Sequence record: PP885688.1
Length of the DNA: 64,000 bases
Direction: 5' to 3' (one strand)
Shown: one piece after another, positions 15,227-56,937 of the stretch
Layout of the letters: every line of letters begins with the position of its first letter
Numbering within the stretch: position 1 is the first letter of the stretch
Notes under the pieces: model-generated
Databases searched by the model: none
Seen by the model: only the letters and a program-made list of their open reading frames with translations
What the model was told of the DNA's origin: nothing
Position numbers and translations under genes: made by a program

Positions 15227-16255
15227 ATGCAAGTTTCTAAAGGTTCGCTCTCCAAGATCATCAAGACTATCGACGCCTTCGACCTCACCGGCTCCCCGTT
15301 CGTGGGCATGCAGTGGGGTGAGGCTGGACCTCTGTTTCACCGCGCCGGTCCGGCTGGCTACGTCGAATCGATCGGGTACAAGCCCGGCCCTCCCTCACTC
15401 GTGATCTCAATCACGCATCTGAAGGAGACCCTCGCCCGCTTCGACGATGACATGATCGACATGAGTCAGGATCGCAGCGGCGTGCTGGTGCTAGAAAGCG
15501 TCGGCAGCGCCTTCGGGACGACTCTGCATGTCCACACGGTACGTTCGAACGTGACCTGGGCCCAGACACACAACCCCGGAGAGAGAACGGTACGGCTTGA
15601 GCCGACCGCCTTCGCCGGGATCAACACCTCACCCTTCAAGCTGGCCTCCGCGCCGGTCCTCCGCCAGGGCAAGCTGATGCTCGCCACCGACTACGGCATC
15701 ATCATGCGTTCGCAGGTGCCGGTCGAGGCCTATCCCTATCCGCGCGAGTCCTTCCTGCGCACGATCTCTCCACTGGCGATCGAGGACCTCTTCCTGACCC
15801 AAGCCGGTTACTGGAGTGCCCTCGCTGGCGGCTTCCGCATCATGATCTCCGGCCACCGCACCGGCGATCCTTTCTTCGACATGTACAACCGTGGTGCCGA
15901 GACGCTGGCTGAGATCCCCGCCGCCCGTCTGACCTCCGCTGTGGGCCATGCCGCCGCCATCGCCACCGCCGCCAAGAAGTCCCGCGTCACCTTCGACCCT
16001 ACGCTCGGTCTGGTGGTCGTCGACGGCTACGGCAACGAGGGTAAGTTCGCCCTGGGTACCTCGGCGGCGTGGGAGCGGTTCTCGGTCCCATCCCAGACGG
16101 CCTCCACTCTAGCCGATGTCCTGAAGCAGGGAACCGAGGAGACAGCGCTCCTGCAGCTTGTCGAACCCGGTACCCTGCGCATCACCCGGGGGCTCTGGGA
16201 GGTCTCTTTCAAAATCTTCGCCTCAAATTCATCTCACGACGTTTCTGGTTTGTAG
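15227..16255 (+). CDS. Divergent beta sliding clamp-like protein
   Basis: 342 aa; MQVSKGSLSKII N-terminus and repeated helix/strand pattern resemble DnaN; dnaX present in window. Confidence 0.45.
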   Translation: MQVSKGSLSKIIKTIDAFDLTGSPFVGMQWGEAGPLFHRAGPAGYVESIGYKPGPPSLVISITHLKETLARFDDDMIDMSQDRSGVLVLESVGSAFGTTLHVHTVRSNVTWAQTHNPGERTVRLEPTAFAGINTSPFKLASAPVLRQGKLMLATDYGIIMRSQVPVEAYPYPRESFLRTISPLAIEDLFLTQAGYWSALAGGFRIMISGHRTGDPFFDMYNRGAETLAEIPAARLTSAVGHAAAIATAAKKSRVTFDPTLGLVVVDGYGNEGKFALGTSAAWERFSVPSQTASTLADVLKQGTEETALLQLVEPGTLRITRGLWEVSFKIFASNSSHDVSGL

Positions 16256-16260
16256 GTTGA
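16228..16260 (+). promoter_or_regulatory. Class 2 promoter (TTCATCTCA-N15-GTAGGTTGA)
   Basis: Motif repeated 9 times with a 15-nt spacer. Confidence 0.75.
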
Positions 16261-16278
16261 GAAAGAGAGGCCTACTAA

Positions 16279-18090
16279 ATGTTTGCAGATAATCCCGACT
16301 TCTTCCCGACGCCACGCGCCATCGCCCGCAGGATGATGGCCAAGATCACGAACAAGGATGCGAAGTACTTCCTTGAGCCTAGCGCCGGGAAGGGCGACAT
16401 TGCGGACGTTATCCGGAACCCGACCACCTTCCAGGAGTTCGAGGCAGAGAACCCGGCCTACGCTGCCCGCAACCGCAGCAAGGGATACGACGGCCACGGC
16501 TGGGGAAATGCCAACTCGCGCGTCAAGGTCGACGTCGTCGAGAGCTACCCGGATCTCATCTCCGTTCTACGCGGTAAGGAATTCGACGTCGTCGGTTACG
16601 ACTGGCTCACCTACGAAGGTGTCAGCTACTACGACGCGATCATCATGAACCCACCGTTCAGCAGTGGCGCGAAGCACCTGCTCAAGGCGTGGGAGTTTAT
16701 TCATCACGGCGAGATTGTCTGCCTCCTCAACGAAGAGACAGTAAAGAACCTCTGCAGCGAGGAGCGCGTCCGTTTGTCTCAGATCATCGAGCAGTTCGGT
16801 AACGTCGAGTTCCTCGGCGACTGCTTCGCCACCGCTGAGCGCCAGACCGGCGTCAACGTCGTGATGGTCTACCTGAAGAAGGTAGCCCCTGACGACACCG
16901 CAGACCTTTGGGCCAAGGACGTCACCCAGGAGAAGCACGCTGGGATCGAGTTCGAGGGCGACATCAACTTCCTCGCCGTCCGTGACAACCTCGGCAACAT
17001 GGAACACTGGTTCAACATGGCGAACGAGCATTTTATGCAGGCCATCCAGCACATCCGCAAGGCACAGATCTATATGCGCCAGAACAAGGTCAGCGATCGC
17101 TCCTACGGCGACGGCGAGAAGGTCGGAATCGAGAAGATCCTCACGATGGCGCTGGAAAACTCTCACACCAGCCGGGCCGAGTTCCTCCGTGCTCACCGCC
17201 GGTGGGCCTGGACGAGCGTCTTCGAGCAGATGGAGTTTGGCCGCTGGCTGGACAGTAAGCAGAAGGAAAAGTTCATGCGCGACGTGCAGCGTGACAGCAC
17301 CATCCCGTTCACCGCACAGAATATCCGGACGACGCTCGACAACGTGTTTGGCTCGCGCAAGAAGCTGTTCGACGAGAGCGTAGCCCGAGTGTTCGATGAG
17401 CTCTGCAGCCACGCCGTCGAGAACGGCGAGGGACCGATCATCCCAGAGAAGATCAAGAATCACCGTGGATCTGAGGGCTGGAAGACCAACGACAACTTCA
17501 AGGTCAACAAGCGGCTTGTCTTCCCATACGGAGTAGAGATGGGACACAGCGGAAGCCTGCGGCAGCGAGGCTACGGTTCCAGCACGAGCTCCACGGTCTG
17601 CCTTGACCTCGACCGCATCCTCTGCGTCCTTGACGGTAAGCCGTTTGATAAGTGCTACACCGTAGGGAAGGCGATCGACAACGCCAAGCCGGGAGAGTTG
17701 GTCGAGTCAGATTACTTCGAGATTCGCGGGTACAAGAAGGGCACGCTACACCTCAAGTGGAAGAGTGAGGAGCTCTGGGAGCGCTTCAACCTGACGGCAG
17801 CAGCCGGGAAGAAGTGGCTCGGCGAAGATACCCAGCAGTACCGCCCGAAGAAGCGCAAGGACGGCGACGAGGCTGAGAACTGGCAGTGCAGAAGCAGTCA
17901 CAAGTTCGTCAACGGTGAGTGCGAGCGCTGCGAGGCTCCCGAGATCGACGAGGTGGAAGCGGTTGAGTGTGACTACTGCCGTGCGATCTTCGAGCACACC
18001 GGTCGCAAGAGCTGCCCCATCCACGAGGAGGTGTTACCCGCCCTCCAGGACGGATTCGCCCCTAACGAGTCGCAGCTACTCCTCGCGTAG
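16279..18090 (+). CDS. SAM-dependent amino-methyltransferase, DUF4942-type, with C-terminal Cys-rich tail
   Basis: FFPTP, LEPSAGKG (motif I), IIMNPPF (motif IV), WKTNDNFKVNKRLVFP. Confidence 0.8.
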   Translation: MFADNPDFFPTPRAIARRMMAKITNKDAKYFLEPSAGKGDIADVIRNPTTFQEFEAENPAYAARNRSKGYDGHGWGNANSRVKVDVVESYPDLISVLRGKEFDVVGYDWLTYEGVSYYDAIIMNPPFSSGAKHLLKAWEFIHHGEIVCLLNEETVKNLCSEERVRLSQIIEQFGNVEFLGDCFATAERQTGVNVVMVYLKKVAPDDTADLWAKDVTQEKHAGIEFEGDINFLAVRDNLGNMEHWFNMANEHFMQAIQHIRKAQIYMRQNKVSDRSYGDGEKVGIEKILTMALENSHTSRAEFLRAHRRWAWTSVFEQMEFGRWLDSKQKEKFMRDVQRDSTIPFTAQNIRTTLDNVFGSRKKLFDESVARVFDELCSHAVENGEGPIIPEKIKNHRGSEGWKTNDNFKVNKRLVFPYGVEMGHSGSLRQRGYGSSTSSTVCLDLDRILCVLDGKPFDKCYTVGKAIDNAKPGELVESDYFEIRGYKKGTLHLKWKSEELWERFNLTAAAGKKWLGEDTQQYRPKKRKDGDEAENWQCRSSHKFVNGECERCEAPEIDEVEAVECDYCRAIFEHTGRKSCPIHEEVLPALQDGFAPNESQLLLA

Positions 18091-18094
18091 CAAG

Positions 18095-18121
18095 TTCCTT
18101 CCCTCGATATTGGGGGAAGGG
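18095..18121 (+). repeat. 27-bp direct repeat copy 1 (TTCCTTCCCTCGATATTGGGGGAAGGG)
   Basis: Identical to 18998-19024; forms a hairpin with GATATT in the loop. Confidence 0.9.
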
Positions 18122-18140
18122 ACCCCTGCTTGGGTATTAC
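18108..18140 (+). promoter_or_regulatory. Class 1 promoter (TATT-N20-GGGTATTAC)
   Basis: Motif match. Confidence 0.8.
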
Positions 18141-18162
18141 CTACAGGAATCTTTCTCCCAAT

Positions 18163-18195
18163 TTCATCTTTCGCGGATTTTGGTCCGTAGGTTGA
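18163..18195 (+). promoter_or_regulatory. Class 2 promoter, leaderless ATG 4 nt downstream
   Basis: TTCATCTTT-N15-GTAGGTTGA-GGAT-ATG. Confidence 0.8.
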
Positions 18196-18199
18196 GGAT

Positions 18200-18667
18200 A
18201 TGAGCACCCAAGTTACTGTAAACGTCGAACTTCACCTCTCCCCGTCGTCCGATCTCCCCCGCCTCTACGGGAAGAAGATCAAAGCAGCCGGTGGAAAGTA
18301 CAGCGAGTGCCGTGGATTAGTCCACCGCCGCTACGTTACGCTCCCTGCGACGGCGACCGAGCTGATCGACACCCTCACTTGGGAGTTTGCCGGTGGCCCG
18401 TTCAGCGGCAAGAAGCCAAAGGTCCTAATGATCGCGCGTGAGGAAGGTGTTTCCGCGCACCTTCCAGCCCACCTTATCTGCTACGAGTGGGTTCAGGGCA
18501 GCGGTGTGAATGCTACCGACTACTTCAACAAGCGTTACACCGAAGCCCGCCTTCGGAACCCGATCGTCGAGCCCATCAAGGTTCATCCGCGCATCGCTCT
18601 TGAGAACCAGCTCGCCGTGGCCAAGGAAACTGTCGCTCGGCTCGAAGCGGAATTGGCGACCCTGTAA
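18200..18667 (+). CDS. Hypothetical protein
   Basis: ORF directly after class 2 promoter. Confidence 0.7.
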   Translation: MSTQVTVNVELHLSPSSDLPRLYGKKIKAAGGKYSECRGLVHRRYVTLPATATELIDTLTWEFAGGPFSGKKPKVLMIAREEGVSAHLPAHLICYEWVQGSGVNATDYFNKRYTEARLRNPIVEPIKVHPRIALENQLAVAKETVARLEAELATL

Positions 18668-18858
18668 TGGCAGACACCAAGTGCCTCGTCCTGGTCACCA
18701 ACGAACACGGGGTCCTATCCACCTACGTGAAGGACAACAACGTAGAGGCTCTCACCCTCGCACACAAGCTGGCCGGTATGGGCATGTGGGGCAAAGAGTT
18801 TCGAGTCGAGATCATGGAAGCCAAACTACTCAGCTACATCTCCGTAAAGAGGACCTAA
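18667..18858 (+). CDS. Hypothetical protein
   Basis: TAATG coupling at both ends. Confidence 0.65.
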   Translation: MADTKCLVLVTNEHGVLSTYVKDNNVEALTLAHKLAGMGMWGKEFRVEIMEAKLLSYISVKRT

Positions 18859-18995
18859 TGTCACGTTTTTTGCTCTGGACCGCCAAGTTGGTCCTACTCA
18901 TCGCCGCCACGCCGCTCGGTCTGATCCTCGCTTGCGTACCACCGTTCAAGGGACCCCACGAGTGGTTCGAATTCTGTATCTACGAGCTGTTCTAA
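18858..18995 (+). CDS. Small membrane protein
   Basis: MSRFLLWTAKLVLLIAATPLGLILACV hydrophobic stretch; coupled start. Confidence 0.55.
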   Translation: MSRFLLWTAKLVLLIAATPLGLILACVPPFKGPHEWFEFCIYELF

Positions 18996-18997
18996 CT

Positions 18998-19024
18998 TTC
19001 CTTCCCTCGATATTGGGGGAAGGG
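18998..19024 (+). repeat. 27-bp direct repeat copy 2
   Basis: Identical to 18095-18121. Confidence 0.9.
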
Positions 19025-19043
19025 CTCTCAATTTGGGTATTAC
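19011..19043 (+). promoter_or_regulatory. Class 1 promoter (TATT-N20-GGGTATTAC)
   Basis: Motif match. Confidence 0.8.
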
Positions 19044-19046
19044 ATT

Positions 19047-19736
19047 TTGGCAGGTTACGGAGAATCGATCTTGGCGCATCTACAGACAGAACTCATTCAA
19101 ACGCGATCCCAGCTAGGCCGCATCGGCCAGCGTCGTGAGTACGAGCGCGAACAGCTGGAGAAGCAGAAGAGGCGCATGGTCGAGATCGAGGAGGAGAAGG
19201 TCGAGCTAGTCAAGGCGGTCGCTCTCATCGATGCCACAATCGGCGTGATCTCCGCCAACGGTATCGGCAAGATCGAGTCCACGGTCACCAATGGCCTGCG
19301 CCTCGTGTTCGACGATCAGACTCTCGCCTTCAAGATCCTTCAGAAGTCAGGGGAGAAGGGCAACAAGTACTACATCGAAGTCCAGAAGGGCGACCACGGT
19401 GGTCCGATCCTCGAGACCTTCGGCGGCGGCGTCGCTAACGTCGTATCCTTCCTGCTCCGCGTCATTATGGTGAAGCGGTTCAAGCTGGCCAAGTTCATGG
19501 TCTGCGACGAGAGCTTCAACAACGTCTCAGCCAAAGTTTTGCCTCGCGTCTCTGAGATGCTTCGCTCCCTGACAGGCGACAGCGGCTACACCATCCTCGC
19601 AGTCACCCACCAACCCATCCTCGCCTCGTCGGCAGACCACGTCTACAAGGTCGACCGGCTGTGGAATCAGAACGTCCCGTCACTGCGTGCGCTCACTGCA
19701 CAGCAGAAGGCGGAGATCGATGCAAACGGAGAGTAA
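19047..19736 (+). CDS. Rad50/SbcC-like ABC ATPase, C-terminal half only
   Basis: Coiled coil, signature-like FGGG, Walker B FMVCDESF, H-loop VTHQ; no Walker A. Confidence 0.75.
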   Translation: MAGYGESILAHLQTELIQTRSQLGRIGQRREYEREQLEKQKRRMVEIEEEKVELVKAVALIDATIGVISANGIGKIESTVTNGLRLVFDDQTLAFKILQKSGEKGNKYYIEVQKGDHGGPILETFGGGVANVVSFLLRVIMVKRFKLAKFMVCDESFNNVSAKVLPRVSEMLRSLTGDSGYTILAVTHQPILASSADHVYKVDRLWNQNVPSLRALTAQQKAEIDANGE

Positions 19737-19739
19737 CGA

Positions 19740-20036
19740 ATGGACGCCTTTTCACGATTGGTAGCAAAGTCGCGGGATCTGGAACGAGAGGTCAACGGCC
19801 CGAAGGATTTCGTGGTCGGCAGAGAGCTGCTGATCAACGCCCAGCATCACCTATTCTTCCAGGTGGCGGGGGAGAACTCTGAGAAGCCGATGATCACCGG
19901 CGGCTACAACGGTCAGAACTACAAGCGATCTCTGCAGACGCTCACCAACTGCATTCAGATCATCGAGTGCGAAGCCAACAGCGAGGCGGTCAAGGCAGGA
20001 AAGAAACAGCCGTTCAGCCTCGCGTGGAAGTACTAA
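19740..20036 (+). CDS. Hypothetical protein
   Basis: ORF in co-oriented run. Confidence 0.65.
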   Translation: MDAFSRLVAKSRDLEREVNGPKDFVVGRELLINAQHHLFFQVAGENSEKPMITGGYNGQNYKRSLQTLTNCIQIIECEANSEAVKAGKKQPFSLAWKY

Positions 20037-20050
20037 CCAAGGAGTCGCAC

Positions 20051-20263
20051 ATGGCCAAAGGTCTCAAGTATGTACGTCAGGTTGTAGAGCAAGAGGGATT
20101 CGACTACGCCTTCCGCCACTACTCCAGCTTCAAAGAGGTAGAGGACGCAGAGTTTCACCGCCTGCGTCAAGCTTACGTCGACGCTGCCAATGCACTCGGT
20201 GCGTACACCGGCTGCGATGAAGAGCTCGACGAGGATGACGAAGATGAAGGTGACGATCAGTGA
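20051..20263 (+). CDS. Hypothetical protein with acidic tail
   Basis: AAGGAG SD before ATG 20051. Confidence 0.7.
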   Translation: MAKGLKYVRQVVEQEGFDYAFRHYSSFKEVEDAEFHRLRQAYVDAANALGAYTGCDEELDEDDEDEGDDQ

Positions 20264-20388
20264 TGGTGAAACGAAAGATCATCGATGACGATGCATTCTG
20301 CCCTAAAGGCTGCATGCTGCACCGCGATGTGTGGACTATGAATCCGAAGTACTGTCCGGATTGTGGGACCAAGATGCCGAAGAGATAG
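20263..20388 (+). CDS. 41-aa zinc-ribbon protein (not in ORF track)
   Basis: TGATG coupling; CPKGC...YCPDCG. Confidence 0.55.
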   Translation: MVKRKIIDDDAFCPKGCMLHRDVWTMNPKYCPDCGTKMPKR

Positions 20389-20431
20389 GTAGTAAACCCT
20401 GCACCACTTTTGCGAATAGGAAAGGCACCAC

Positions 20432-21034
20432 ATGACGAACGGTATCGTATCAATCACAGTCGGCGGCAGGATGGCAATGAAGATCGTCGCAGGCATCCAT
20501 GGCGCGAACGCTACCAATCTGGCGCTCAAGATCCGCCAGCTGGGGCGCGTACCCACAGGGGAAGAGGCCCGCGCATTCTGTCAGGAGATCAAGTTCGGAT
20601 CCCGCCTGTGCCTCGTCGTCCAGACACCTGAGGAAGACTTCTTCGCGGGCGACGACACCCTCTCTCCGGCCTATCGGGAGAAGTTCAACGACCCAGCTGC
20701 GAACCCACGTTTTGAGGATCGTACGCCCTGGGATCAGGAGAACACCGTCATCATCAGCGTCGACGAGTACGCCCCCAAGCCTGCGGGCTCAGTGTTGAAG
20801 CCTGAAGACGTCAAGATCTCGCCCTACGACAACAACCAGCTCCGCAGTCTTGAGATCGACAGCATCTGTGGAATTCAGGAAGACGGATCGTCAACCCGTC
20901 GCGTCATCTGGAATCTTCAGCAGGCCTTCCAACTGGGCTTCACTGCGCTCAGCCGTGGCGAGACGATTGATGGTCAGGTCCATCCTCCACAGCCGGACTG
21001 GATGACCGGCGAAGATGTCCCCGCAAAGGCATGA
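20432..21034 (+). CDS. Hypothetical protein
   Basis: ORF with AGGAAAGG SD-like sequence. Confidence 0.65.
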   Translation: MTNGIVSITVGGRMAMKIVAGIHGANATNLALKIRQLGRVPTGEEARAFCQEIKFGSRLCLVVQTPEEDFFAGDDTLSPAYREKFNDPAANPRFEDRTPWDQENTVIISVDEYAPKPAGSVLKPEDVKISPYDNNQLRSLEIDSICGIQEDGSSTRRVIWNLQQAFQLGFTALSRGETIDGQVHPPQPDWMTGEDVPAKA

Positions 21035-21222
21035 CACGCCGCCGCACACTTCTGCTCGGCATCATCCTAGGCATCCTTCTGGGCTGGGGTCTGGTCGCAA
21101 TGCACGCGGCTATGGCTCCGGTCCAGACTCCTGCTGAGGATGACGATGACGGCCCCGATTACAGCCCGCCGAGTTCCGGCTGGACCTACGTCAACTACCA
21201 CCCGCTCAAGGTCACACTATGA
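21031..21222 (+). CDS. Small membrane protein
   Basis: N-terminal TM helix; ATGA overlap. Confidence 0.6.
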   Translation: MTRRRTLLLGIILGILLGWGLVAMHAAMAPVQTPAEDDDDGPDYSPPSSGWTYVNYHPLKVTL

Positions 21223-21467
21223 AGAAGTTCCTTTACGTCGTACTCGCGTTTCTACTCGGTGCCGTCACCATGGCTGCGCTGCCGCGTCCGCGCTTCGAAC
21301 GCCTCTACTCCCAAAACCTCACAGGAGCGACACAGGGTGAAGAGATGATCTTCACCGTCTTCCACGACCGCGAGACTGGACAGGAGTCAGTTTGTGCCCG
21401 CCGGGTCTGGGACAGTCAGTCGGTGTCGTGCTATCTCACTGGGCGCACCTGGGACGCAGGAAAGTAA
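21219..21467 (+). CDS. Small secreted/membrane protein
   Basis: MKKFLYVVLAFLLGAV signal-like N-terminus; C-x8-C. Confidence 0.6.
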   Translation: MKKFLYVVLAFLLGAVTMAALPRPRFERLYSQNLTGATQGEEMIFTVFHDRETGQESVCARRVWDSQSVSCYLTGRTWDAGK

Positions 21468-21485
21468 CCGCATCAGGAGATTGTC

Positions 21486-21890
21486 ATGGGACTTGATCTC
21501 ACGCAGATCACGGTCAAGTCGAAAGAGGAGATCGTCTCACAGCTGTCGGAGTTGATTCACCGGCACCGGCGACGCTACATCAAGAAACACACGCGCCCCT
21601 GCCCGCTGAACTGCCAGTTCGCGAGTGTAGTGCGCAAGGGTGTAACTGGATGCTCGACCTGTGAGTCCAGCAATCCGGAGTCCTGCCGCCAGGAGGCCTA
21701 CTTCGTCCCGATCTCCACCAAGGACGAAGTCGCCGAAGAGTTCGCGCTCGACATTCGCGACCCGAAGATCCTGCAGCACGACTACCGCGACATCCTCACG
21801 CTGCTCTGGGTGCTGGGACAGTTCGATGGGGAGACGCCACAAGAGCAAGTCATCGCCAGCGCAGAGAAGCGCCAGCGGAAGGAAACGTAA
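21486..21890 (+). CDS. Cys-rich hypothetical protein
   Basis: CPLNC...CSTC...C cluster; AGGAG SD. Confidence 0.65.
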   Translation: MGLDLTQITVKSKEEIVSQLSELIHRHRRRYIKKHTRPCPLNCQFASVVRKGVTGCSTCESSNPESCRQEAYFVPISTKDEVAEEFALDIRDPKILQHDYRDILTLLWVLGQFDGETPQEQVIASAEKRQRKET

Positions 21891-22669
21891 TGGTATCGGG
21901 ATACGAGTTTTACAAGGGACCGTGGCAGGACACCGGCTGGCTGGTCAACGCGACGCATGCGTTCTTCACTGAGTATGCTCCGACGAAGAACATCTACGAG
22001 GTCACGAAGGAGAAGATCGTCGAGCGCCGCAAGTGGACTCCGACGCTGTCCTACTATGACACGCACTTCACCCAGATCCTCGAAGAGCTCGGCATCATCT
22101 ACGTCCCCAAGCAGGTGGACCCAGGTCCCGGCGTGCTCTTCCCGATCCCTGACTATCACCAGCGCCTGACCCATGGCAAGATCAACCCCTTCTATGAGCT
22201 GCTCCTCCGCGACCAGCCCGCTAAGTATGGATTCCTAGGCAAGAAAGATGCCTTCCGAGGACCGTCGTGGATGGGCGCGACCGATGAGGTCCTCCGGCTG
22301 ATCGCACGCTACCGTACAGTCATTCTGGTTGAAGGTCCGTATGATCTTCTCGCCTGCCGCCTGCTGTGGCCGAACGCTGCGGTGCTCTCGACCGGCACCA
22401 AGACCATCAACGATATGCATGTGGCGTATCTGCGCATGCTGGGCGTCAAGACGGTCTATCTCCTGTTCGACTATGAGTCTGCGAAGGCTGGTAAGTCCGA
22501 TGGTCAGGGACAGATCGCGATGGAGATCATCCGCAACACCTATGGCCGCACCTCAGGCCTGCGATTCGAGATCGCGAACTGCCCGAACGACGACCCCGCG
22601 ATGTGTCTCGAAGACTACTGGGGCGCTCAGGCTCTGCGCAAAGTTCTCGTAGGAATCTTTCCTCAATAA
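21890..22669 (+). CDS. DnaG-type primase catalytic/TOPRIM domain lacking the zinc-binding domain
   Basis: LFPIPD...KYG, VILVEGPYD, VYLLFDYE TOPRIM motifs. Confidence 0.75.
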   Translation: MVSGYEFYKGPWQDTGWLVNATHAFFTEYAPTKNIYEVTKEKIVERRKWTPTLSYYDTHFTQILEELGIIYVPKQVDPGPGVLFPIPDYHQRLTHGKINPFYELLLRDQPAKYGFLGKKDAFRGPSWMGATDEVLRLIARYRTVILVEGPYDLLACRLLWPNAAVLSTGTKTINDMHVAYLRMLGVKTVYLLFDYESAKAGKSDGQGQIAMEIIRNTYGRTSGLRFEIANCPNDDPAMCLEDYWGAQALRKVLVGIFPQ

Positions 22670-22699: not shown

Positions 22700-22743
22700 C
22701 TCATGGGGACGCCAAGCGAAACCCCTTGAGAGGAACCTCCTAC

Positions 22744-42243: not shown

Positions 42244-42276
42244 TCAACCTACGGAGCTGGTGAGCCCAAAGATGAC
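42244..42276 (-). promoter_or_regulatory. Class 2 promoter, leaderless
   Basis: GTCATCTTT-N15-GTAGGTTGA-ATAC-ATG; box lies within palindrome CCCAAAG-TCAT-CTTTGGG. Confidence 0.8.
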
Positions 42277-43887: not shown

Positions 43888-43920
43888 TCAACCTACAAAC
43901 CAAACCCGGCCAAAGATGAA
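43888..43920 (-). promoter_or_regulatory. Class 2 promoter, leaderless
   Basis: TTCATCTTT-N15-GTAGGTTGA-AGAT-ATG. Confidence 0.8.
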
Positions 43921-45382: not shown

Positions 45383-45415
45383 TATCTCGGTAAGCAGGCC
45401 CTCCATGGGTATTAG
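45383..45415 (+). promoter_or_regulatory. Class 1 promoter (TATC-N20-GGGTATTAG)
   Basis: Motif match. Confidence 0.75.
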
Positions 45416-45434
45416 CCCGTGGAGGGCTTTTCTT
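45398..45434 (+). terminator. Terminator-like hairpin enclosing the class 1 downstream element
   Basis: GCCCTCCATGGGT-ATTA-GCCCGTGGAGGGC followed by TTTTCTT. Confidence 0.6.
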
Positions 45435-50038: not shown

Positions 50039-50042
50039 CACG

Positions 50043-50076
50043 ATGCCGGGGCCAACCAGCCCCGGCATTTTTCTTT
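50043..50076 (+). terminator. Intrinsic terminator
   Basis: ATGCCGGGGC/GCCCCGGCAT stem plus T tract after phoH. Confidence 0.8.
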
Positions 50077-50082
50077 GCGAGA

Positions 50083-50115
50083 TATACGGTGTAGCGCCTC
50101 CTCGATGGGTATTAG
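50083..50115 (+). promoter_or_regulatory. Class 1 promoter (TATA-N20-GGGTATTAG)
   Basis: Motif match. Confidence 0.8.
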
Positions 50116-50140
50116 CGAAAGACAGACCCGGAGAGCACAC

Positions 50141-51133
50141 ATGAGCATTATCAAACCCAGATTGTTACGCGCGGCATATGTTGCCGGTAGGGCCACAAAG
50201 GGAACGCTGACCATCGACCCAGAGGGATCGAATAGCCTGCTGATCGATGAGGACGACAACACTGTCGCCATCGTTGCCTTTCGCAACACAAACGGCCAAC
50301 CGGGCATTGACCCCGCCAACCTCGATGAGAAGTATGCGAACTGCGAACGTATCGTCGCGTGCTGGAACTTCTGCCGAGGCCTCCCCACTTCTTCGTTGCA
50401 GAGCGCCGCTCCTCTGTTGGAGTTGCTGACGACCGCTGACTATGCGAGTGACTTCCTCCCCGGCCAGGACGACCGAGACCAGCGCGATCTACGCAAGGAA
50501 CTCCAGGAGATCCTCGCGACCTTCTCGCCACGGACGCCGGAGCTGCAGACGCAGATCGATACCGTCACAGACCGCCTCCGGTCCGCAAACATCACTGATG
50601 ACAACACACCTATGTACGACGTTGGCGATCGCTGGGAACGCGCGAACGGCTTCCACGATCCTGCGATCAGCATCCCCACGCCAAAAGACATGAACGACGG
50701 TTGGGCCCATAGCGGCGTCGATGATTCAACCTCCGGCTTGATCAAGGAGCTCAAGGGATTCTTCGCCGACGACAGGCACGAGCAGCTGATGACCGCCTTC
50801 GCGGAACAGCGTGAGGTAGAGCAGATCCTCTCAAGCACGGACGGAGTCCTCACGGCACCGGCCACTGTCACAGCCGAGCAGATCACCGAGCTGCGCGAGC
50901 ACTGTGAGGCGGCCAAGAAAGACGCCGACTTTCAGATCGTCACCAGCCACGAGGTCAATTGGATCGAGGTACCTCTGACCAGCGACACCCCGGTCATCGA
51001 CTCCATGGAGAGGTTCCGCAACCAGATGGAAGTGGGCCTCGGTATCGCCCCTGGGTGCAACTGCGTCGGCACCAAGAGTGGTCACGATGCCGGTTGTCCG
51101 AAGGCCGCCCCTACCGTGGACGTCATTGCCTGA
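50141..51133 (+). CDS. Hypothetical protein
   Basis: GGAG SD before ATG 50141. Confidence 0.7.
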   Translation: MSIIKPRLLRAAYVAGRATKGTLTIDPEGSNSLLIDEDDNTVAIVAFRNTNGQPGIDPANLDEKYANCERIVACWNFCRGLPTSSLQSAAPLLELLTTADYASDFLPGQDDRDQRDLRKELQEILATFSPRTPELQTQIDTVTDRLRSANITDDNTPMYDVGDRWERANGFHDPAISIPTPKDMNDGWAHSGVDDSTSGLIKELKGFFADDRHEQLMTAFAEQREVEQILSSTDGVLTAPATVTAEQITELREHCEAAKKDADFQIVTSHEVNWIEVPLTSDTPVIDSMERFRNQMEVGLGIAPGCNCVGTKSGHDAGCPKAAPTVDVIA

Positions 51134-51369
51134 TGCCTCCGACCTACCACTTCGGAGTCGACTACGGCTGCGGTAGGGACCGCACGTTGATCACGGTCGT
51201 CCTCGTCGGTTCAGCGGTCACCAACGGATCGGAGATCGTCACCATCGTCGACGCTCCCTGCGGCAACAACTATCCACCACCTGACCACACACCCGTAGCC
51301 AAGCCACCACTGGGCAAGCGCAAGTCGTACCGCCAGACCCAGAGAGACCTTCCGAAGTTCCTAAAGTAG
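51133..51369 (+). CDS. Hypothetical protein
   Basis: TGATG coupling. Confidence 0.55.
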   Translation: MPPTYHFGVDYGCGRDRTLITVVLVGSAVTNGSEIVTIVDAPCGNNYPPPDHTPVAKPPLGKRKSYRQTQRDLPKFLK

Positions 51370-51378
51370 GAGAACCTG

Positions 51379-51729
51379 ATGACCTTGTCTGCCCTTGAAA
51401 CAGATGCCTCGACGAAGAACGCCGGTGAGGTGCTCCACCAACTCATCAGCTCGCACGTAAATCTCTTCGCGCACGACTACATGGTGCTGGAACGCGAAGC
51501 GATGATCTACGGCATCGTCATCGGCTGGTCGGACAAGGAGCTCAGCTACCTCGCATCCTTGCACCGATGGAGCGACGAGGACGTATCTCGGCTGAAGTCC
51601 TGGCATGCCGCCTTCGAGGCTGCGTTCTTCCAGCCCAAGGTACGACAGCTCAACCCGCTCCATGCCTTCGGCGAGGACCTCGACTTTCTCGCTGAACTCG
51701 TCGGCATTCCACCGAGGCTCGCCAAGTAA
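51379..51729 (+). CDS. Hypothetical protein
   Basis: AGGAG SD. Confidence 0.6.
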   Translation: MTLSALETDASTKNAGEVLHQLISSHVNLFAHDYMVLEREAMIYGIVIGWSDKELSYLASLHRWSDEDVSRLKSWHAAFEAAFFQPKVRQLNPLHAFGEDLDFLAELVGIPPRLAK

Positions 51730-51741
51730 TTCTGCCCAGTT

Positions 51742-51774
51742 GTCATCTTTGGTTCCCTGAGGTTCGTAGGTTGA
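51742..51774 (+). promoter_or_regulatory. Class 2 promoter
   Basis: GTCATCTTT-N15-GTAGGTTGA; leader carries GGAGG SD. Confidence 0.8.
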
Positions 51775-51790
51775 AACCAGGAGGACCTTT

Positions 51791-52360
51791 ATGCATGCCG
51801 CACCCGAACCCCTTGAGGAGTACCAGGATCTTATGTACGAACATCTGACCAGCGACTACACCATCCGCCAACACCCCAACCCAGTGCTCTATGAGATCGC
51901 TGAACCGATCGCCGAGGATGAGTTCGGCGATGAGCTGTTCGCTCTGGGTGCGCAGATGGTCGCCATCGTGAAGCAACACGACGCCCTCGGTATCGCCGCG
52001 AACCAGATCGGCCTGCTCAAGCGCATCTTCGCCATGGAGTCCACCCTCGGGCCTGTCGTGATCTGCAACCCGGAGCTCACACTGAGCAAAGAGACTGACT
52101 ATAGGGATGAGGGATGCCTGTCCATGCCCGGCGTACAGGAGCAGGTCATCCGCTCCACCAGTCTGCTGATGAAGTTCCGTACTCCGATGGGTGCACCGGC
52201 CTCCATCCAGCTCGAAGGCCTCGACGCGCGTATCGTGCAACACGAAGTCGACCATCTTGACGGAATCAACTTCGTCGACCGCCTCCCGCGCAACCTGAAG
52301 AAGCGTGCGATGAAGTCGTGGGAAGAAAAACTCGCAAAGATCAAAAAATCTGCGGCGTAA
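51791..52360 (+). CDS. def: Peptide deformylase
   Basis: GIAANQIG, EGCLS, QHEVDHLDG. Confidence 0.93.
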   Translation: MHAAPEPLEEYQDLMYEHLTSDYTIRQHPNPVLYEIAEPIAEDEFGDELFALGAQMVAIVKQHDALGIAANQIGLLKRIFAMESTLGPVVICNPELTLSKETDYRDEGCLSMPGVQEQVIRSTSLLMKFRTPMGAPASIQLEGLDARIVQHEVDHLDGINFVDRLPRNLKKRAMKSWEEKLAKIKKSAA

Positions 52361-52361
52361 T

Positions 52362-52394
52362 TTCATCTTTGGACCCTCCAGGTTTGCAGGTTGT
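52362..52394 (+). promoter_or_regulatory. Class 2 promoter variant (TTCATCTTT-N15-GCAGGTTGT)
   Basis: Two mismatches in downstream element. Confidence 0.6.
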
Positions 52395-52433
52395 GGATAG
52401 AGAGATAAATATTTCGGTTTTCCACCGACCACA

Positions 52434-52466
52434 TAAACGGGTAAGTGCCCTTCGCTTGGGTATTGA
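52434..52466 (+). promoter_or_regulatory. Class 1 promoter variant (TAAA-N20-GGGTATTGA)
   Basis: Motif match with mismatch; tandem with class 2. Confidence 0.65.
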
Positions 52467-52504
52467 CCACTGTACGAGCGAAAAGCTCGACCTGGAGGAT
52501 TCAA

Positions 52505-52996
52505 ATGTCTACCGCTACCATGCCGCACATCACCATCAATGGCAACGACTACGAGATGGACGGCTACAAAGTGTCGCACCGTCAGAATATGGGCATCAGC
52601 GCCCCTCTGACCGCACCGGCAGAGATCGATTTCCAGAAGAATTTCATGAAGCCGCTGTACCGCAAGCTGACTCTCTCCGAGAAGCTCAGCCTCCGCTTCC
52701 GCAGCCACACTTTCAGCTGGCCGCATCAGCGCCAGGACGCCCCCGCACAGCTCTGCTACCCCAACTGGAAGCCACGCGCCAAGCGTAAGGCCTCCGTGAA
52801 GGGCGAGCCCACCGAAGTCGTCTTTGACTCCCACCAGATCTGCACCACCACGGGCGCGATGCGCTTCTATGACAGCGTCAACATGGTCGCGGGAGAGTAC
52901 TTCGCCTGGACTGACGCCGGAGCCCGCTCTGAGCGCCAGCAGAACCCATTTGATGTACTGACCACCGACGAAAATGACTTCGGGATCGCGCGGTAA
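52505..52996 (+). CDS. Hypothetical protein
   Basis: GGAGG SD before ATG 52505. Confidence 0.7.
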   Translation: MSTATMPHITINGNDYEMDGYKVSHRQNMGISAPLTAPAEIDFQKNFMKPLYRKLTLSEKLSLRFRSHTFSWPHQRQDAPAQLCYPNWKPRAKRKASVKGEPTEVVFDSHQICTTTGAMRFYDSVNMVAGEYFAWTDAGARSERQQNPFDVLTTDENDFGIAR

Positions 52997-53045
52997 CCCG
53001 TGTCCAGAGCCGCCGTCAGCAACCTCCTAAAATTTCCCATTTCAA

Positions 53046-53078
53046 TATTGGGTGCACAGAGTCTCCGAACGGTATTAG
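53046..53078 (+). promoter_or_regulatory. Class 1 promoter (TATT-N20-CGGTATTAG)
   Basis: Motif match. Confidence 0.7.
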
Positions 53079-53128
53079 CCCGCAGGAGACTTTATGAAAA
53101 CCGAAATTCTCAACAACGGGGGTTCGCG

Positions 53129-53494
53129 ATGAGGACCCCTTACAACCTCGAAGAAGCGGAAGCGACCTTTGGTATCGAGCGCGTCCGCAGACCAAGCAGG
53201 AAAGAGCGCCGGTCTCACGCAATCAGAATGGCACGCAAAAAGTGCCTCCTCTGCGACAAGTGGGGCTACTACTCCGAGGATGCTACCCGCATCATCATCA
53301 GCCGGATGCTCAGCAACGGCTCACTGGCGGGACCGGACATGTTCACCTTCCGCCCTTATCAGTGCGCCAACAACTGGTGGCATACCGGACACGACTCAAA
53401 GGCTCGCCGTCTCCTCCGCGACAAGGTTGAGATGGACTCTCACCGGGCCATGCTTCGGGCACAGCGATGCTGCAGTACTTCAGCAGCTGCATAG
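53129..53494 (+). CDS. Hypothetical protein with CxxC/C..H motifs
   Basis: CLLCDK...YQC...WHTGH; coupled to a 12-aa uORF. Confidence 0.6.
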   Translation: MRTPYNLEEAEATFGIERVRRPSRKERRSHAIRMARKKCLLCDKWGYYSEDATRIIISRMLSNGSLAGPDMFTFRPYQCANNWWHTGHDSKARRLLRDKVEMDSHRAMLRAQRCCSTSAAA

Positions 53495-53499
53495 CTCAC

Positions 53500-53549
53500 T
53501 GGGGATCGGGCTACGACACTGGGTCGCCGATCCCCATTTTTTCTTCTTT
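53500..53549 (+). terminator. Intrinsic terminator
   Basis: TGGGGATCGG/CCGATCCCCA stem plus T tract. Confidence 0.75.
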
Positions 53550-53554
53550 CGAAA

Positions 53555-53587
53555 GTCATCTTTGGCCCGACGGGCTTTGTAGGTTGA
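53555..53587 (+). promoter_or_regulatory. Class 2 promoter, leaderless
   Basis: AAAGTCATCTTT-N15-GTAGGTTGA-GGAT-ATG. Confidence 0.8.
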
Positions 53588-53591
53588 GGAT

Positions 53592-54734
53592 ATGAGCACA
53601 CTTCTTGAAGCCGCGATGAGCGTTAGCATGACGCTCCAGAACGATAGACACAGCAAGTCCTACTTCGCCGCCATCGAACAGGTTGAAGGTGGGTGGGTCG
53701 TCAACTACACCTACGGCGCGATCGGTGCGATGCAGAAACCCGGCACTAAGACCAAGACCCCTGTCCCCTACGAGAAGGCCTTCGGCATCTGGACCAAGCT
53801 GGTCGGCGAGAAGCTCAACGACCCTTGCGACTGCTGCGGTGCGACCTACACCGGGACCAACGCGACCGCGACCACATCCGAAGGCACCACCTCTGTCTCC
53901 GCCCCCGTGCTCGCGCAGACTCATCCCGGCTTCAGCCCTGAGCTCCTCGAAGCAATCGGCGAGGAGGATGCCGACAAGTACATCCTCGACGACCGCTACG
54001 GCGCTGAGCGTAAGTTCGACGGCGAGCGCCTGTCGATCTCCTACGTCGCCGGAGAGATCATCGGCTACAACCGTCTGGGTAAAGTCGTCCCGGCCCCTGA
54101 CTCGCTCAAGAAAAAGATCGCCTTCCTCATGGACTGGCGCAGCGAGAACGCCGTCCAGATCGACGGTGAGTGGATCCGCGACGAGTACGTTGCTTTCGAC
54201 CTGCTGGTCCTAGGCGGCGACGTCAAGCACCTCCCGATGAAGACTCGCCACAAGATGCTCACCGAGCTCCTGGCGACCACCGGCATCAAGGTAGCAGACC
54301 TCGTCACCGGCAAAGAGATGAAGGCTGCTCTCCTCGTCTGGGAGACAGCACATCGCGGCGAGGGCATCGTCTTCAAGAAGCTCTCCGCCCCGTACATGCC
54401 GGGACGTCGCGGCACCAACGTCAAGCTGAAGTTCTGGGTCTCAGCCACCGTCCGCGTCACCCGCAAGATGAAGAACAAGGACGCGCACAGCTTTGGCATC
54501 GAGGCCCACACGCCCGGCTCGCCTCTGGGTGAATGGGGCTTCGTCGGCAACGTCACCTGCAAGGGACCGCTGCCTGAGATCGGCACCTACCGTGAGGTCA
54601 AGTACCTCTACGTCGGCAAGGGCGGCCACCTGTACCAGTCCGAGGACCTCGGTGCACGTACCGATGTCACCGCTGACGACTGCCTCTACTCCACGCTGAA
54701 GCACAAGCAGGACAAGGAGCTGCTGGCTGTCTAA
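53592..54734 (+). CDS. ATP-dependent DNA ligase with N-terminal WGR-like domain
   Basis: ERKFDGER, IDGE, AFDLL, EGIVFK, KLK motifs; N-terminal SKSYF...VNYTYGAIG. Confidence 0.85.
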   Translation: MSTLLEAAMSVSMTLQNDRHSKSYFAAIEQVEGGWVVNYTYGAIGAMQKPGTKTKTPVPYEKAFGIWTKLVGEKLNDPCDCCGATYTGTNATATTSEGTTSVSAPVLAQTHPGFSPELLEAIGEEDADKYILDDRYGAERKFDGERLSISYVAGEIIGYNRLGKVVPAPDSLKKKIAFLMDWRSENAVQIDGEWIRDEYVAFDLLVLGGDVKHLPMKTRHKMLTELLATTGIKVADLVTGKEMKAALLVWETAHRGEGIVFKKLSAPYMPGRRGTNVKLKFWVSATVRVTRKMKNKDAHSFGIEAHTPGSPLGEWGFVGNVTCKGPLPEIGTYREVKYLYVGKGGHLYQSEDLGARTDVTADDCLYSTLKHKQDKELLAV

Positions 54735-54752
54735 AAGTTTGTTTCGCTGAAA

Positions 54753-54785
54753 GTCATCTTTCGCTTGTTTCACTTTGTAGGTTGA
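54753..54785 (+). promoter_or_regulatory. Class 2 promoter, leaderless
   Basis: AAAGTCATCTTT-N15-GTAGGTTGA-AAAT-ATG. Confidence 0.8.
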
Positions 54786-54789
54786 AAAT

Positions 54790-55584
54790 ATGAGCACACA
54801 CAACAGCCCGAACCTGTCAGACGTAACCAACATGATCGCCGAGCACGGCGACAACCTGGCATTCGTGGTCAACATGAGCGGCGGTAAAGACTCTGTACGT
54901 ATGCTCGGCTTCATCCGTGAACACTTTCCACTCCAAAAAACGTACGTGGTCATGGCCGACACCGGTTTCGAACATGCGAAGCCCGTGTCGGCTGAGGACT
55001 GGGCCCGGCAGATCAGCGCCAGCTACGGCCTCGACCTCCATGTCGTCAAGAATCCCAACAAGACCTACCTCCAGATGGTCGAGAACCGCAAGATGTTCCC
55101 GTCGGCCTCGACCCGCCAGTGCACCTCGGACCTCAAGCGCGGTCCGATCCAGAAGTTCATCCGCCACCTCGACGAGAAGGTCATCATCAGCGTCATGGGT
55201 ATTCGCGCCGAAGAGTCACCGGCTCGCTCGAAGCAGAATCCCTGGAAGTTCAACGCGGGCATGTCCAAGGCCGGACGCATCATCTGGGACTGGATGCCGA
55301 TCTTCGAAGAGACCCTCACCGAGGTCCTCAACTGGCACCACGAGAACAACGTTCCCCTTCACCCGGTTTACGTCGAGGAGTATCACCGCGACGGCACCAA
55401 GGGTGGTTTCCTGCGACGCCTCTCCTGCCGCGTCTGCATCTTCTCCACCGACCACGACCTCCGCGAGATTTACAAGCACGATCGCGAGGCCTTCGACCTA
55501 GTCGCCAATCTCGAGACCAAGATCGGCTTTACGATGAAGTCAGGCAAGAGCCTGTTTCAGATCCTCGGCCAGGAGGCCGCATAG
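54790..55584 (+). CDS. PAPS reductase-family (adenine nucleotide alpha hydrolase) protein
   Basis: PP-loop SGGKDS, ADTG, RQCTSDLK, GIRAEES, RLSCRVC. Confidence 0.85.
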   Translation: MSTHNSPNLSDVTNMIAEHGDNLAFVVNMSGGKDSVRMLGFIREHFPLQKTYVVMADTGFEHAKPVSAEDWARQISASYGLDLHVVKNPNKTYLQMVENRKMFPSASTRQCTSDLKRGPIQKFIRHLDEKVIISVMGIRAEESPARSKQNPWKFNAGMSKAGRIIWDWMPIFEETLTEVLNWHHENNVPLHPVYVEEYHRDGTKGGFLRRLSCRVCIFSTDHDLREIYKHDREAFDLVANLETKIGFTMKSGKSLFQILGQEAA

Positions 55585-55752
55585 ATGGCTTGCGAATGTT
55601 GCACCAATGAAGTTGAGTTCGAAGTGTCGATGATCAACAAGAACGGCTACGATCTCACCGACCACGTCATGGCGCATACCGCTCAAGAGGCTATGTTCCG
55701 CGCTGAGCTCAGACATCTCCCCTACACCGCCCAGAAAGCGATCGCCATATGA
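55585..55752 (+). CDS. 55-aa hypothetical protein (not in ORF track)
   Basis: AGGAGG SD; ATGA overlap with next gene. Confidence 0.5.
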   Translation: MACECCTNEVEFEVSMINKNGYDLTDHVMAHTAQEAMFRAELRHLPYTAQKAIAI

Positions 55753-56120
55753 GCAACACTCCCACCCTTCGCCCTTACCAACAGGAAGCATTAGCAAGCA
55801 TCGAGCAGATCCTTGCCCAGGGACGTAAGTTCCAGATCCTGGCCGTAGACGACAGTGCTCCACTAGGCAACGCCCTCGACAGCTACCGTGAGGAGCTCCT
55901 CGACGAGCAGCGCCGCATCACCGCCCAGGAGATCAAGTTCTTCTTCTTCGACGGAGAGAAGGTCATCAAACGTGCGGGGGAACCACCTCTACCACGCGGC
56001 ACCTACTTCGCCGCCCACTACATCATCACCGACGGCGTCGTCACCAAGGACAAGGCGACCGGCACTGAGGTCGAGCACATGGTTATGGCGGCAGTTCGCG
56101 CGGATGCGGAGGACCTGTGA
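55749..56120 (+). CDS. Hypothetical protein with LRPYQ helicase Q-motif-like N-terminus
   Basis: TLRPYQQEAL but no Walker A. Confidence 0.55.
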   Translation: MSNTPTLRPYQQEALASIEQILAQGRKFQILAVDDSAPLGNALDSYREELLDEQRRITAQEIKFFFFDGEKVIKRAGEPPLPRGTYFAAHYIITDGVVTKDKATGTEVEHMVMAAVRADAEDL

Positions 56121-56434
56121 TCGCCTTCCCGAAAATGCTTGGGCTCCCAGAGACGAAGCCGCAGCTACGGGTCTACCGCGTGAGTGGACTCTGGAACGAC
56201 GTACGTGCGAAGAACCGGCACAATCAAGCCAACTTCGTGTGCGCCGCTGCAAGCAAGGCCGCATTCTTTCGGCTTTACCCCGACTTCCGTAACAACGAGG
56301 TCGCCGTTGAGCTCAGAGGTCCCGTCAAAGCCCTCGCACGCACCAAGCCCGGCGCTCTCTTCGCCCTGGGTATCACCGACTGGACCGGACACTTCGTCGA
56401 GGTCACAGACATGTCGACCGTGAGGCGGGGATAA
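56117..56434 (+). CDS. Hypothetical protein
   Basis: GTGA overlap; GGAGG SD. Confidence 0.6.
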   Translation: MIAFPKMLGLPETKPQLRVYRVSGLWNDVRAKNRHNQANFVCAAASKAAFFRLYPDFRNNEVAVELRGPVKALARTKPGALFALGITDWTGHFVEVTDMSTVRRG

Positions 56435-56436
56435 CG

Positions 56437-56658
56437 ATGAGCGTGATAGCAGACGGTTACTGGATCGTCGAATGGGATGATGTGACAACAAACTTCGAAA
56501 AGGCCACCTATCGCGGTGTTGTGCGTGTCGAGCGAGAAAACTTCGGCCACGGTAACGCCAAGGTCTACACGACGGTGCCGCACTTGAAGAACGTTTGGAA
56601 GATGGAAGAGTTCGAGAAGTACAACCGGTTCATCCGGCCTGTGGAGATGTGGCCATGA
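56437..56658 (+). CDS. Hypothetical protein
   Basis: ORF in run. Confidence 0.55.
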   Translation: MSVIADGYWIVEWDDVTTNFEKATYRGVVRVERENFGHGNAKVYTTVPHLKNVWKMEEFEKYNRFIRPVEMWP

Positions 56659-56888
56659 TGATCTGGTCACTCCAGTGGAGCCGAGACCAGGGCAACTTCG
56701 TGCGCCTTGAAAACGTGCACTTCGACCCCGAGCTAACTGAATGCTGGCTGCAGGACGTCCGAGAGCGCCTGCCCGACACCATCGTCATGGTTCGCTACCC
56801 AAAGCCCACCGTCGAGGAGATGGAGAACAGTCCTGAAGCGATGCAGCTGGAGCTGGAGCATGCCCGCGAGTATGCCCAGGCCGAGTAA
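56655..56888 (+). CDS. Hypothetical protein
   Basis: ATGA overlap. Confidence 0.55.
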   Translation: MMIWSLQWSRDQGNFVRLENVHFDPELTECWLQDVRERLPDTIVMVRYPKPTVEEMENSPEAMQLELEHAREYAQAE

Positions 56889-56904
56889 ATTTCTTCCCCC
56901 CAAA

Positions 56905-56937
56905 GTCATCTTTTGCGCATCCGCCTCTGTAGGTTGA
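56905..56937 (+). promoter_or_regulatory. Class 2 promoter
   Basis: AAAGTCATCTTT-N15-GTAGGTTGA; leader carries AAGGAG SD. Confidence 0.8.

Follow-up and report, generated by a model that had tools for sequence, protein, structure and literature searches.

Two-block upstream motifs of the acidobacterial jumbo phage Tunturi_5: probable phage-specific promoters with a phage ECF-type sigma factor as candidate reader

The first 64,000 bases of Tunturiibacter phage Tunturi_5 (PP885688.1, bases 1-64000, 100% identity), referred to here as the window, carry nine copies of a two-block upstream element, the class 2 motif, which, judging by its sequence, is very probably a promoter. Our tentative reading is that the class 2 elements are phage-specific promoters, to which the host core RNA polymerase (RNAP) would be directed by a phage-encoded sigma factor of the extracytoplasmic function (ECF) type recognizing both blocks. 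The reader would be gp211, which resembles sigmaE of E. coli and which we favour, or, alternatively, the divergent gp3. Transcription would start at the seventh base past TAGGTT; in about one third of the copies this base would coincide with the A of the ATG, so that the mRNA would be leaderless, and at most of the other copies the mRNA would begin a few bases ahead of a GAGG Shine-Dalgarno (SD) sequence. A phage sigma cascade would result, with class 2 as one tier and with the class 1 promoters and a looser motif of structural genes, both described below, as the others.

Tunturi_5 (Tunturi 5 in the following) is a jumbo phage, a myovirus of 308,711 bp isolated on the acidobacterium Tunturiibacter psychrotolerans X4BP1, a member of the soil Acidobacteria. 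We know of nothing in the published literature on the promoters of Acidobacteriota phages. The paper on the Tunturi genomes (PMC11924767) mentions neither promoters nor sigma factors nor transcription, and none of the upstream motif classes of Tunturi 5 is described in it. Such phage-specific classes number at least two, probably three, class 2 included. The genome-wide counts given below cover the full Tunturi 5 record with its annotation, and the phages used for comparison were Tunturi 3, which has the same host species (L166/L167), and Tunturi 4, which has the same host genus (L124/L125).

The class 2 motif and its geometry

The 33-base motif is composed, in this order, of the box TCATCTTT, a spacer and the 9-mer GTAGGTTGA, and the gap between the box and the 9-mer is 15 nt in each of the nine window copies. 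The pattern TCATCT-N19-AGGTT has nine exact matches in the window; dinucleotide shuffles of the same DNA gave on average 0.75 matches even with one mismatch allowed, and none of 100 shuffles reached the observed count. An earlier note on this DNA had listed nine copies with a 15-nt spacer, and we recovered all of them at the same positions and on the same strands. The note had also assigned GTAGGTTGA to all nine, which holds for eight (the 9-mer occurs exactly eight times in the window), while the copy at 52362 reads GCAGGTTGT.

At five copies the ATG of an annotated gene lies exactly 4 nt past the 9-mer, as the note had claimed, and these genes are predicted to be leaderless: gp11 (copy 18163..18195, plus strand, ATG 18200, with a class 1 motif 30 nt upstream at 18133), gp41 (42244..42276, minus strand, ATG 42239), gp46 (43888..43920, minus strand, ATG 43883, the box lying inside a 10-bp inverted repeat), gp61, an ATP-dependent DNA ligase (53555..53587, plus strand, ATG 53592), and gp62, a PAPS reductase (54753..54785, plus strand, ATG 54790). 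Three further copies, all on the plus strand, have a longer leader with an SD of its own: the copy at 16228..16260 would drive the DNA methyltransferase gp10 (ATG 16279, SD GAGAGG), that at 51742..51774 the peptide deformylase gp58 (ATG 51791, SD AGGAGG), and that at 56905..56937 gp68 (ATG 56956, SD AAGGAG). The box of the 16228 copy is degenerate (TCATCTCACG) because this copy overlaps the 3' end of gp9. The ninth copy (52362..52394, plus strand), which has the variant -10 block, is followed by gp59, whose annotated start is at 52505 and for which an alternative GTG is found at 52445. The statement that the five leaderless copies have no SD is broadly correct, except that the 9-mer contains AGGT at a distance of 7 nt from the ATG, which might serve read-through transcripts as a weak SD.

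In the complete genome (308.7 kb) we found 31 strict copies and, by means of a position weight matrix, five variants (97369-, 91325-, 142009+, 256432- and 102539-), which gives 36 sites. These sites are separated from the background by a clean gap, as none of them scores below 14.7 and the background does not exceed -3.4. Aligned, the copies give the consensus taAAaa.tTTc..ccAAA(g/t)TCATCTTTgG-N13-(ggTtT)GTAGGTTGA, the core of which holds 52 bits over the 31 copies. Two blocks are nearly invariant: (AAA g/t)TCATCTTTgG spans about -40 to -27, tGTAGGTTGA about -14 to -5, and they are joined by a spacer of fixed length and variable sequence, the spacing of the blocks being identical in 31 of 31 strict copies. 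An A/T-rich tract resembling an UP element lies upstream of the box, at about -57 to -41. All 31 strict copies point toward the next gene. Thus the element has what a bipartite promoter of the sigma70 family has, namely two blocks near -35 and -10, a constrained distance between them and the same orientation as the gene.

The gene starts follow the same geometry genome-wide. An ATG lies exactly 4 nt past the 9-mer at 10 annotated genes, at one 7-codon mini open reading frame (mini-ORF) and at gp202, and 13 further gene starts are found 13-20 nt downstream of the 9-mer, preceded by a GAGG-type SD starting 4-7 nt past it. Therefore, the 5' untranslated regions are predicted to be either absent or about 9-16 nt long. 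The predicted transcription start, the seventh base after TAGGTT, is deduced from the fixed ATG at 11-12 copies. The genes behind the class 2 copies are mostly small and of unknown function, with a methyltransferase among them.

One might argue that the motif acts in RNA, as a translation enhancer, an SD surrogate or a processing site, or that it is a selfish repeat cassette. The AGGT ahead of the ATG in the +4 copies speaks for this, as does the appearance of some copies, which look as though motif and gene 5' end had been copied as a unit: at record positions 81690-81667 (minus strand) a class 2 copy precedes the 7-codon mini-ORF, the first codons of which are like the start of gp62 (window 54790), and several class 2 genes begin with ATG(A/G)GCACAC. 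Together these likenesses suggest that the promoter was duplicated with the 5' end of the gene. However, the longer-leader copies have their own SD at variable distance, a point from which the earlier note had already argued for a promoter rather than a ribosome binding site, and the two blocks with a fixed-length but variable spacer, the shared orientation of motif and gene and the survival of the motif in a diverged relative (see below) fit a promoter. Additionally, no covariation supports a hairpin, and an Rfam scan of the window matched no family. We thus consider a function other than that of a promoter very improbable.

The box had been described as a quasi-palindrome, AAAG-TCAT-CTTT. 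This is true of the consensus, but it is not kept copy by copy: across the 31 genome-wide copies the complementarity of the pairs equals the expectation from the column frequencies, the left arm is absent in 8 of 31, and the pairs outside the palindrome core are no better than in shuffles (p=0.19). The palindrome is a consensus effect only, and a hairpin or dyad at the box was rejected for lack of covariation. As the dyad symmetry is not maintained, the idea of a dimeric binder is weakened, and the A-tract more likely belongs to the A/T-rich, UP-like upstream region.

Comparison with host-type promoters

Neither Tunturi 3 nor Tunturi 4 has an annotated sigma factor or RNAP gene, and both are enriched in sites of the form TTGACN-N16-18-TAnnnT (28 vs about 7 expected in Tunturi 3, 17 vs about 4 expected in Tunturi 4), most of which lie upstream of genes. 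The consensus of these host-type promoters is aAAaa.gcTTGACA-N17/18-tgTGnTAtanT in Tunturi 3 and AAAtAACatcTTGACACC...gGTGTAnnAT in Tunturi 4, and an A-rich tract directly upstream of the -35 element is seen in both. Therefore, the -35 element of the host sigmaA is the canonical TTGACA. Tunturi 5, on the contrary, has only 4 such sites vs about 9 expected (617 kb, both strands), none of them convincing.

When class 2 is compared with these promoters, its two halves behave differently. At the position of TTGACA it has TCATCT, which agrees in at most two of six bases, so that TCATCT is not a housekeeping -35 element of the host and a foreign box stands in place of TTGACA, as the earlier note had seen; we put this box at about -36 to -27. 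The -10 module, TG-TAGGTT followed by 6 nt and the A, looks host-like: it has the TAnnnT hexamer, the TG that often precedes it and a start about 7 nt after it. The note's assignment of TAGGTT to the TAnnnT type of -10 element, 6 nt ahead of +1, gains from Tunturi 3, in which four promoters have the same arrangement of hexamer, 6 nt and ATG. Published genome statistics on three Acidobacteria report, in all three, leaderless genes in which TANNNT precedes the start by about 12 nt, on average 13% of the genes (PMC3160421). Class 2 shares with the leaderless TAnnnT promoters of Actinobacteria, Deinococcus-Thermus and Acidobacteria (Zheng et al. 2011, PMC3160421) the distance of 12 nt from the first T of the hexamer to the ATG, and differs from them in the near-invariance of the entire element and in having an upstream half specific to the phage. 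A second hexamer, TAGGAT, which came up among the k-mers of Tunturi 4, was rejected as a host -10 element, as its sites lie inside genes and on both strands. The related (C)TAGGA(A/T)T is over-represented in Tunturi 4 (84 sites), with CTAGGATT occurring 42 times vs 2.5 expected, and could serve in modification, restriction avoidance or nicking.

The earlier note had proposed, as one option, host sigma-70 with an unusual -35 element. This is disfavoured, since Tunturi 3 and Tunturi 4 use TTGACA, Tunturi 5 is depleted of it, and the host-type promoters show TTGACA where the note had asked whether TCATCT is found. A related possibility, which we regard as quite unlikely, is that sigmaA alone reads class 2 as the early promoter class: the UP-like tract and TG-TAGGTT would suffice, the missing -35 element would be tolerated, and the box would be conserved for another role, such as an operator for later shut-off (for example by the MarR-like gp72) or a site for polymerase modified by injected ADP-ribosyltransferases (ART). 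Some class has to be active ahead of all phage protein synthesis, and only class 2 has a -10 element compatible with sigmaA (A-11, T-7); the small unknown genes and the methyltransferase behind it are early-like, and ART domains are present on three virion-type polyvalent proteins. These ART-domain proteins are reminiscent of T4 Alt, which is a resemblance only. However, the host-type promoters rely on a strongly conserved TTGACA, and a box that does not vary across the 31 copies needs a sequence-specific reader; for these two reasons we find recognition by sigmaA alone less likely. Also, the dyad symmetry that a dimeric repressor needs is not maintained, and a search of 185,579 species genomes, Acidobacteriota included, for the strict motif returned only 18 scattered single matches, none of them in Acidobacteriota.

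Phage sigma factors as candidate readers

The genome encodes two putative readers that the earlier note missed, gp211 and, inside the window, gp3. The product of gp211 (record 151918-152616) is an ECF sigma factor with the Pfam domains Sigma70_r2 and r4_2, it matches E. coli sigmaE (1OR7) at E=3e-19, and it retains counterparts of two promoter-reading residues of RpoE, R171 (-31) and N84 (-13/-12). Promoters of ECF sigma factors follow a rule of a 7-bp -35 element, a spacer of 15-18 bp and a short -10 element, with very low tolerance of variation (PMC7776599), and the class 2 geometry, TCATCTT-N16-GTA(GG) with invariant spacing, falls within it. The sigmaE consensus is GGAACTT / GTC (PMC6648896); in the form GGAACTT-N~15-GTC it likewise consists of two short, near-invariant blocks with rigid spacing within 15-18 bp, and it has A-33, C-31, T-30, T-29 and (T)GT in common with class 2. 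Furthermore, positions -13, -10, -9, -8, -6 and -5, which sigmaA barely reads, are invariant in class 2 and degenerate in the host-type promoters of Tunturi 3 and Tunturi 4. Finally, a class 2 copy heads the gene string gp214-gp213-gp212-gp211 in Tunturi 5 and in a relative, L162. We favour a phage ECF-type sigma factor as the reader because of the rigid spacing, the invariant bases not read by sigmaA, the presence of gp211 in the genome, the ECF geometry, the resemblance to sigmaE, the retained R171 and N84 equivalents and the class 2 copy at the head of gp214-gp211.

The second candidate, gp3 (window 3240..4220, plus strand, with a class 1 motif upstream at 3047), is a divergent sigma-factor candidate with a predicted two-domain, ECF-like fold, from a family of at least 271 clusters. 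It has no sequence match in Pfam or the PDB, and sequence profiles of its family match no sigma factor. A single-sequence AlphaFold2 model was unusable (predicted local distance difference test, pLDDT, 32), and a model built from a 41-sequence alignment reached a mean pLDDT of 82.6. In a Foldseek search of the PDB with the latter model the top matches were almost all ECF sigma factors, at E-values of only 0.06-1, so that the model gives weak evidence for a sigma identity and this half of the proposal is correspondingly weakened.

Several further observations weigh against a phage ECF sigma factor as the reader of class 2. The class 2 -35 block, TCATCTT, is without AA/AAC, which almost all ECF -35 elements have, and the class 1 motif, with its TAATC, looks more ECF-like in this block. 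The -10 block is at the same time a good host-type element, with TG before TAnnnT as in Tunturi 4, and therefore sigmaA could be the reader. The promoter directly before the gp212-gp211 operon is of class 1, in Tunturi 5 as well as in both of its relatives, and the usual autoregulation of ECF sigma factors would thus pair gp211 with class 1. If both conserved classes needed phage sigma factors, nothing obvious would be left for the unaided host polymerase at time zero besides the four TTGACA-type sites, which are at chance level. In addition, the genes behind class 2, being mostly small unknowns, are of the kind typical of early genes, and the start site is a prediction from geometry.

Part of this evidence would suit a different division of labour, in which sigmaA reads the -10 module (TG-TAGGTT) and an activator, encoded by the phage or delivered by the virion, sits on the TCATCTTTGG box (about -36 to -27) and replaces the contact of sigma region 4 with the -35 element, in the manner of MotA/AsiA sigma appropriation in T4 or of a class II activator. 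We regard this as the main rival, less probable than a phage sigma factor. The -10 block, the adjacent TG and the 6 nt to +1 match the host-type promoters of Tunturi 3 and Tunturi 4, and only the -35 module differs; the A-tract upstream of the box is placed as in those promoters (AAAgc-TTGACA vs AAAg-TCATCT); and an activator must touch sigma or RNAP, so that fixed spacing is to be expected. The box also occupies about the positions of the MotA box of T4. On the other hand, recognition by sigmaA does not explain the invariant G-10, G-9, T-8, G-6 and A-5, no candidate protein was identified, and the gene of the activator would itself need a promoter usable by the unaided host polymerase, of which none is evident in Tunturi 5. 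A tblastn search of all Tunturi 5 DNA with T4 MotA and AsiA found no homologue (best E 4.9 and 1.7), although remote or analogous proteins could escape such a search.

The problem of the first transcription leads to one more possibility, which we judge unlikely: that Tunturi 5 abandoned host-type promoters altogether, that all its temporal classes are phage-specific, and that its first transcription needs a specificity factor or a polymerase-modifying enzyme delivered by the virion. The candidates would be an injected sigma factor or activator, or the ART-domain polyvalent proteins, and class 2 would be switched on by the injected factor. Three proteins of 1260-1490 aa, gp225 (record 163409-167197), gp273 (225802-230271) and gp321 (261501-265589), are annotated as NUDIX hydrolases; they are polyvalent, adjoin virion genes and combine an ART-PolyVal ADP-ribosyltransferase domain with GNAT, NUDIX, 2'-5' RNA ligase-like and SprT-like domains. 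All three are candidates for proteins that are injected and modify the host. A search among the large phage proteins for a hidden RNAP found none (three polyvalent ART-domain proteins, two without a Pfam match).

One feature of gp211 stands apart from its role as a putative reader. Together with its two homologues (P0001, P0002) it has a Cys-rich C-terminal extension, R-x-CKCxCGT...RGxG...GHK, which is absent from ordinary ECF sigma factors and may be a zinc-binding regulatory tail.

Relatives and distribution of the motif

True relatives were reached only via the sigma locus, in two metagenome contigs, L162 and L163, where the sigma factor is 62% identical and the gp214 homologue 87% identical. 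Among the sigma factors of this locus the recognition helix varies (NARLVLYRAR vs NAKSVLLRAR or NAKSTLHRAR). Class 1 promoters are kept in both contigs. Upstream of the gp214 homologue, the DNA of L162 has diverged except for GGTTTGTAGGTT and TTCAaCT (TTCAnCT), which are spaced as in Tunturi 5, and these islands amount to a phylogenetic footprint, if a small one, of class 2. The first gene behind this promoter, gp214 (record 153721-154245; L162 1736-2257), encodes a basic protein of 174 aa with no assigned function, and it is far more conserved between Tunturi 5 and the relative than the sigma factor is.

Exact-pattern scans for class 2 matched 116 contigs in IMG/VR, 18 in genome_contigs and 18 in metagenome_contigs, in all cases as single matches, and those inspected were without the flanking consensus. 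As these matches are single, without that context where inspected and, in the genome records, never from Acidobacteriota, the collections contain no host copy and no close relative. A terminase search in IMG/VR likewise found no relative. Contigs with homologues of the ligase gp61 or the RecT gp318 (L164, L165, L168-L170) were considered as relatives and rejected, being unrelated elements without the class 2 motif.

Comparison with known systems

Class 2 would, as a phage-specific temporal promoter class, be a known kind of element, and it can be set against two systems of this sort. The likeness to promoters of ECF (group 4) sigma factors and to phage sigma cascades such as that of the Bacillus phage SPO1 lies in the short, rigidly spaced blocks, in a cognate-type sigma factor, gp211, encoded by the phage, and in a copy of the promoter upstream of the gene string with the sigma gene. 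The differences from ECF promoters are that the -35 block has no AA/AAC core, of which only A-33 and C-31 coincide with GGAACTT, that the class 2 -10 block also satisfies the housekeeping TAnnnT rule, and that the promoter directly before the sigma operon belongs to another class, whereas ECF sigma genes are usually autoregulated.

The middle promoters of T4 combine a MotA box with a sigma70 -10 element. The MotA box has a TGCTTtA-like consensus and is centred near -30. Like class 2, these promoters have a housekeeping-type -10 element and, at a similar position, a phage box of about 10 bp with an A/T-rich 5' edge in place of the -35 element, and they are interspersed with a second class of phage promoters, tandem arrangements included. 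The class 2 box TCATCTTTGG is, however, unrelated in sequence to the MotA box, and the class 2 spacing and -10 block are far more rigid than those of the T4 promoters. Of the MotA-like sigma appropriation that the earlier note had considered, the architecture of host-like -10 element and foreign box therefore stands, and the likeness does not extend to the sequence of the box or to a homologue of MotA or AsiA detectable by tblastn.

The 36 class 2 sites, the more than 40 class 1 sites and the late-gene motif make up a first, testable promoter map for a phage of Acidobacteriota, and the analysis points to two phage ECF-like sigma factors together with a near-total absence of host-type promoters. 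Tunturi 3 and Tunturi 4, in turn, yield a first working consensus of the housekeeping promoter of the host, and leaderless starts are predicted for these phages. Compact, strong and orthogonal cassettes of promoter and 5' end could serve as genetic tools in Acidobacteriota, which are hard to manipulate.

Other motif classes of Tunturi 5

A looser motif, which we call class 3, GACTAC-N~9-12-(T)TAG(G/A)(G/A)G, precedes many structural genes as well as the gp213 homologues of both relatives (record 28025, 153711, 194372, 223844, 224359, 261471, 266894, 276394, 290092, 298449 and others). A simple regular expression for it has 32 matches vs 21 expected, a weak enrichment barely above chance, and class 3 is therefore tentative; part of it may simply be the SD.

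Class 1, found by k-mer statistics, is more abundant than class 2 and has the form tcaaTAaTCa-N~18-tGGGTATTAgc, which may also be written ATAATC..GGGTATTA. GGTATTA occurs at 55 genome sites, of which 42 also have the upstream box; the window contains 12 class 1 motifs, at 3047, 15194, 18133, 19036, 22692, 44477, 45408, 46445, 50108 and 53071 on the plus strand and at 60174 and 62759 on the minus strand. Replication genes, tRNAs and both phage sigma genes are found behind class 1 motifs, and many copies have an ATG 6 nt past GGTATTA and look leaderless. The GGGTAT block is akin in appearance to the -10 elements of the sigmaB/SigF type, and the -35 block TAATCA has T.ATC in common with the class 2 block TCATCT. 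At many class 1 sites (for example window 45396-45429, 46445 and 62759; record 74269 and 218496) a strong GC hairpin of down to -31 kcal/mol carries GGGTATTAGC in its loop; the stem is variable in sequence, and its 3' arm is the SD of the downstream gene (GGAGGG), sometimes followed by a T-run. Judged from this arrangement, RNA reading through from upstream would fold into a terminator or an SD-masking hairpin, and RNA started at the class 1 promoter itself would lack the 5' arm.

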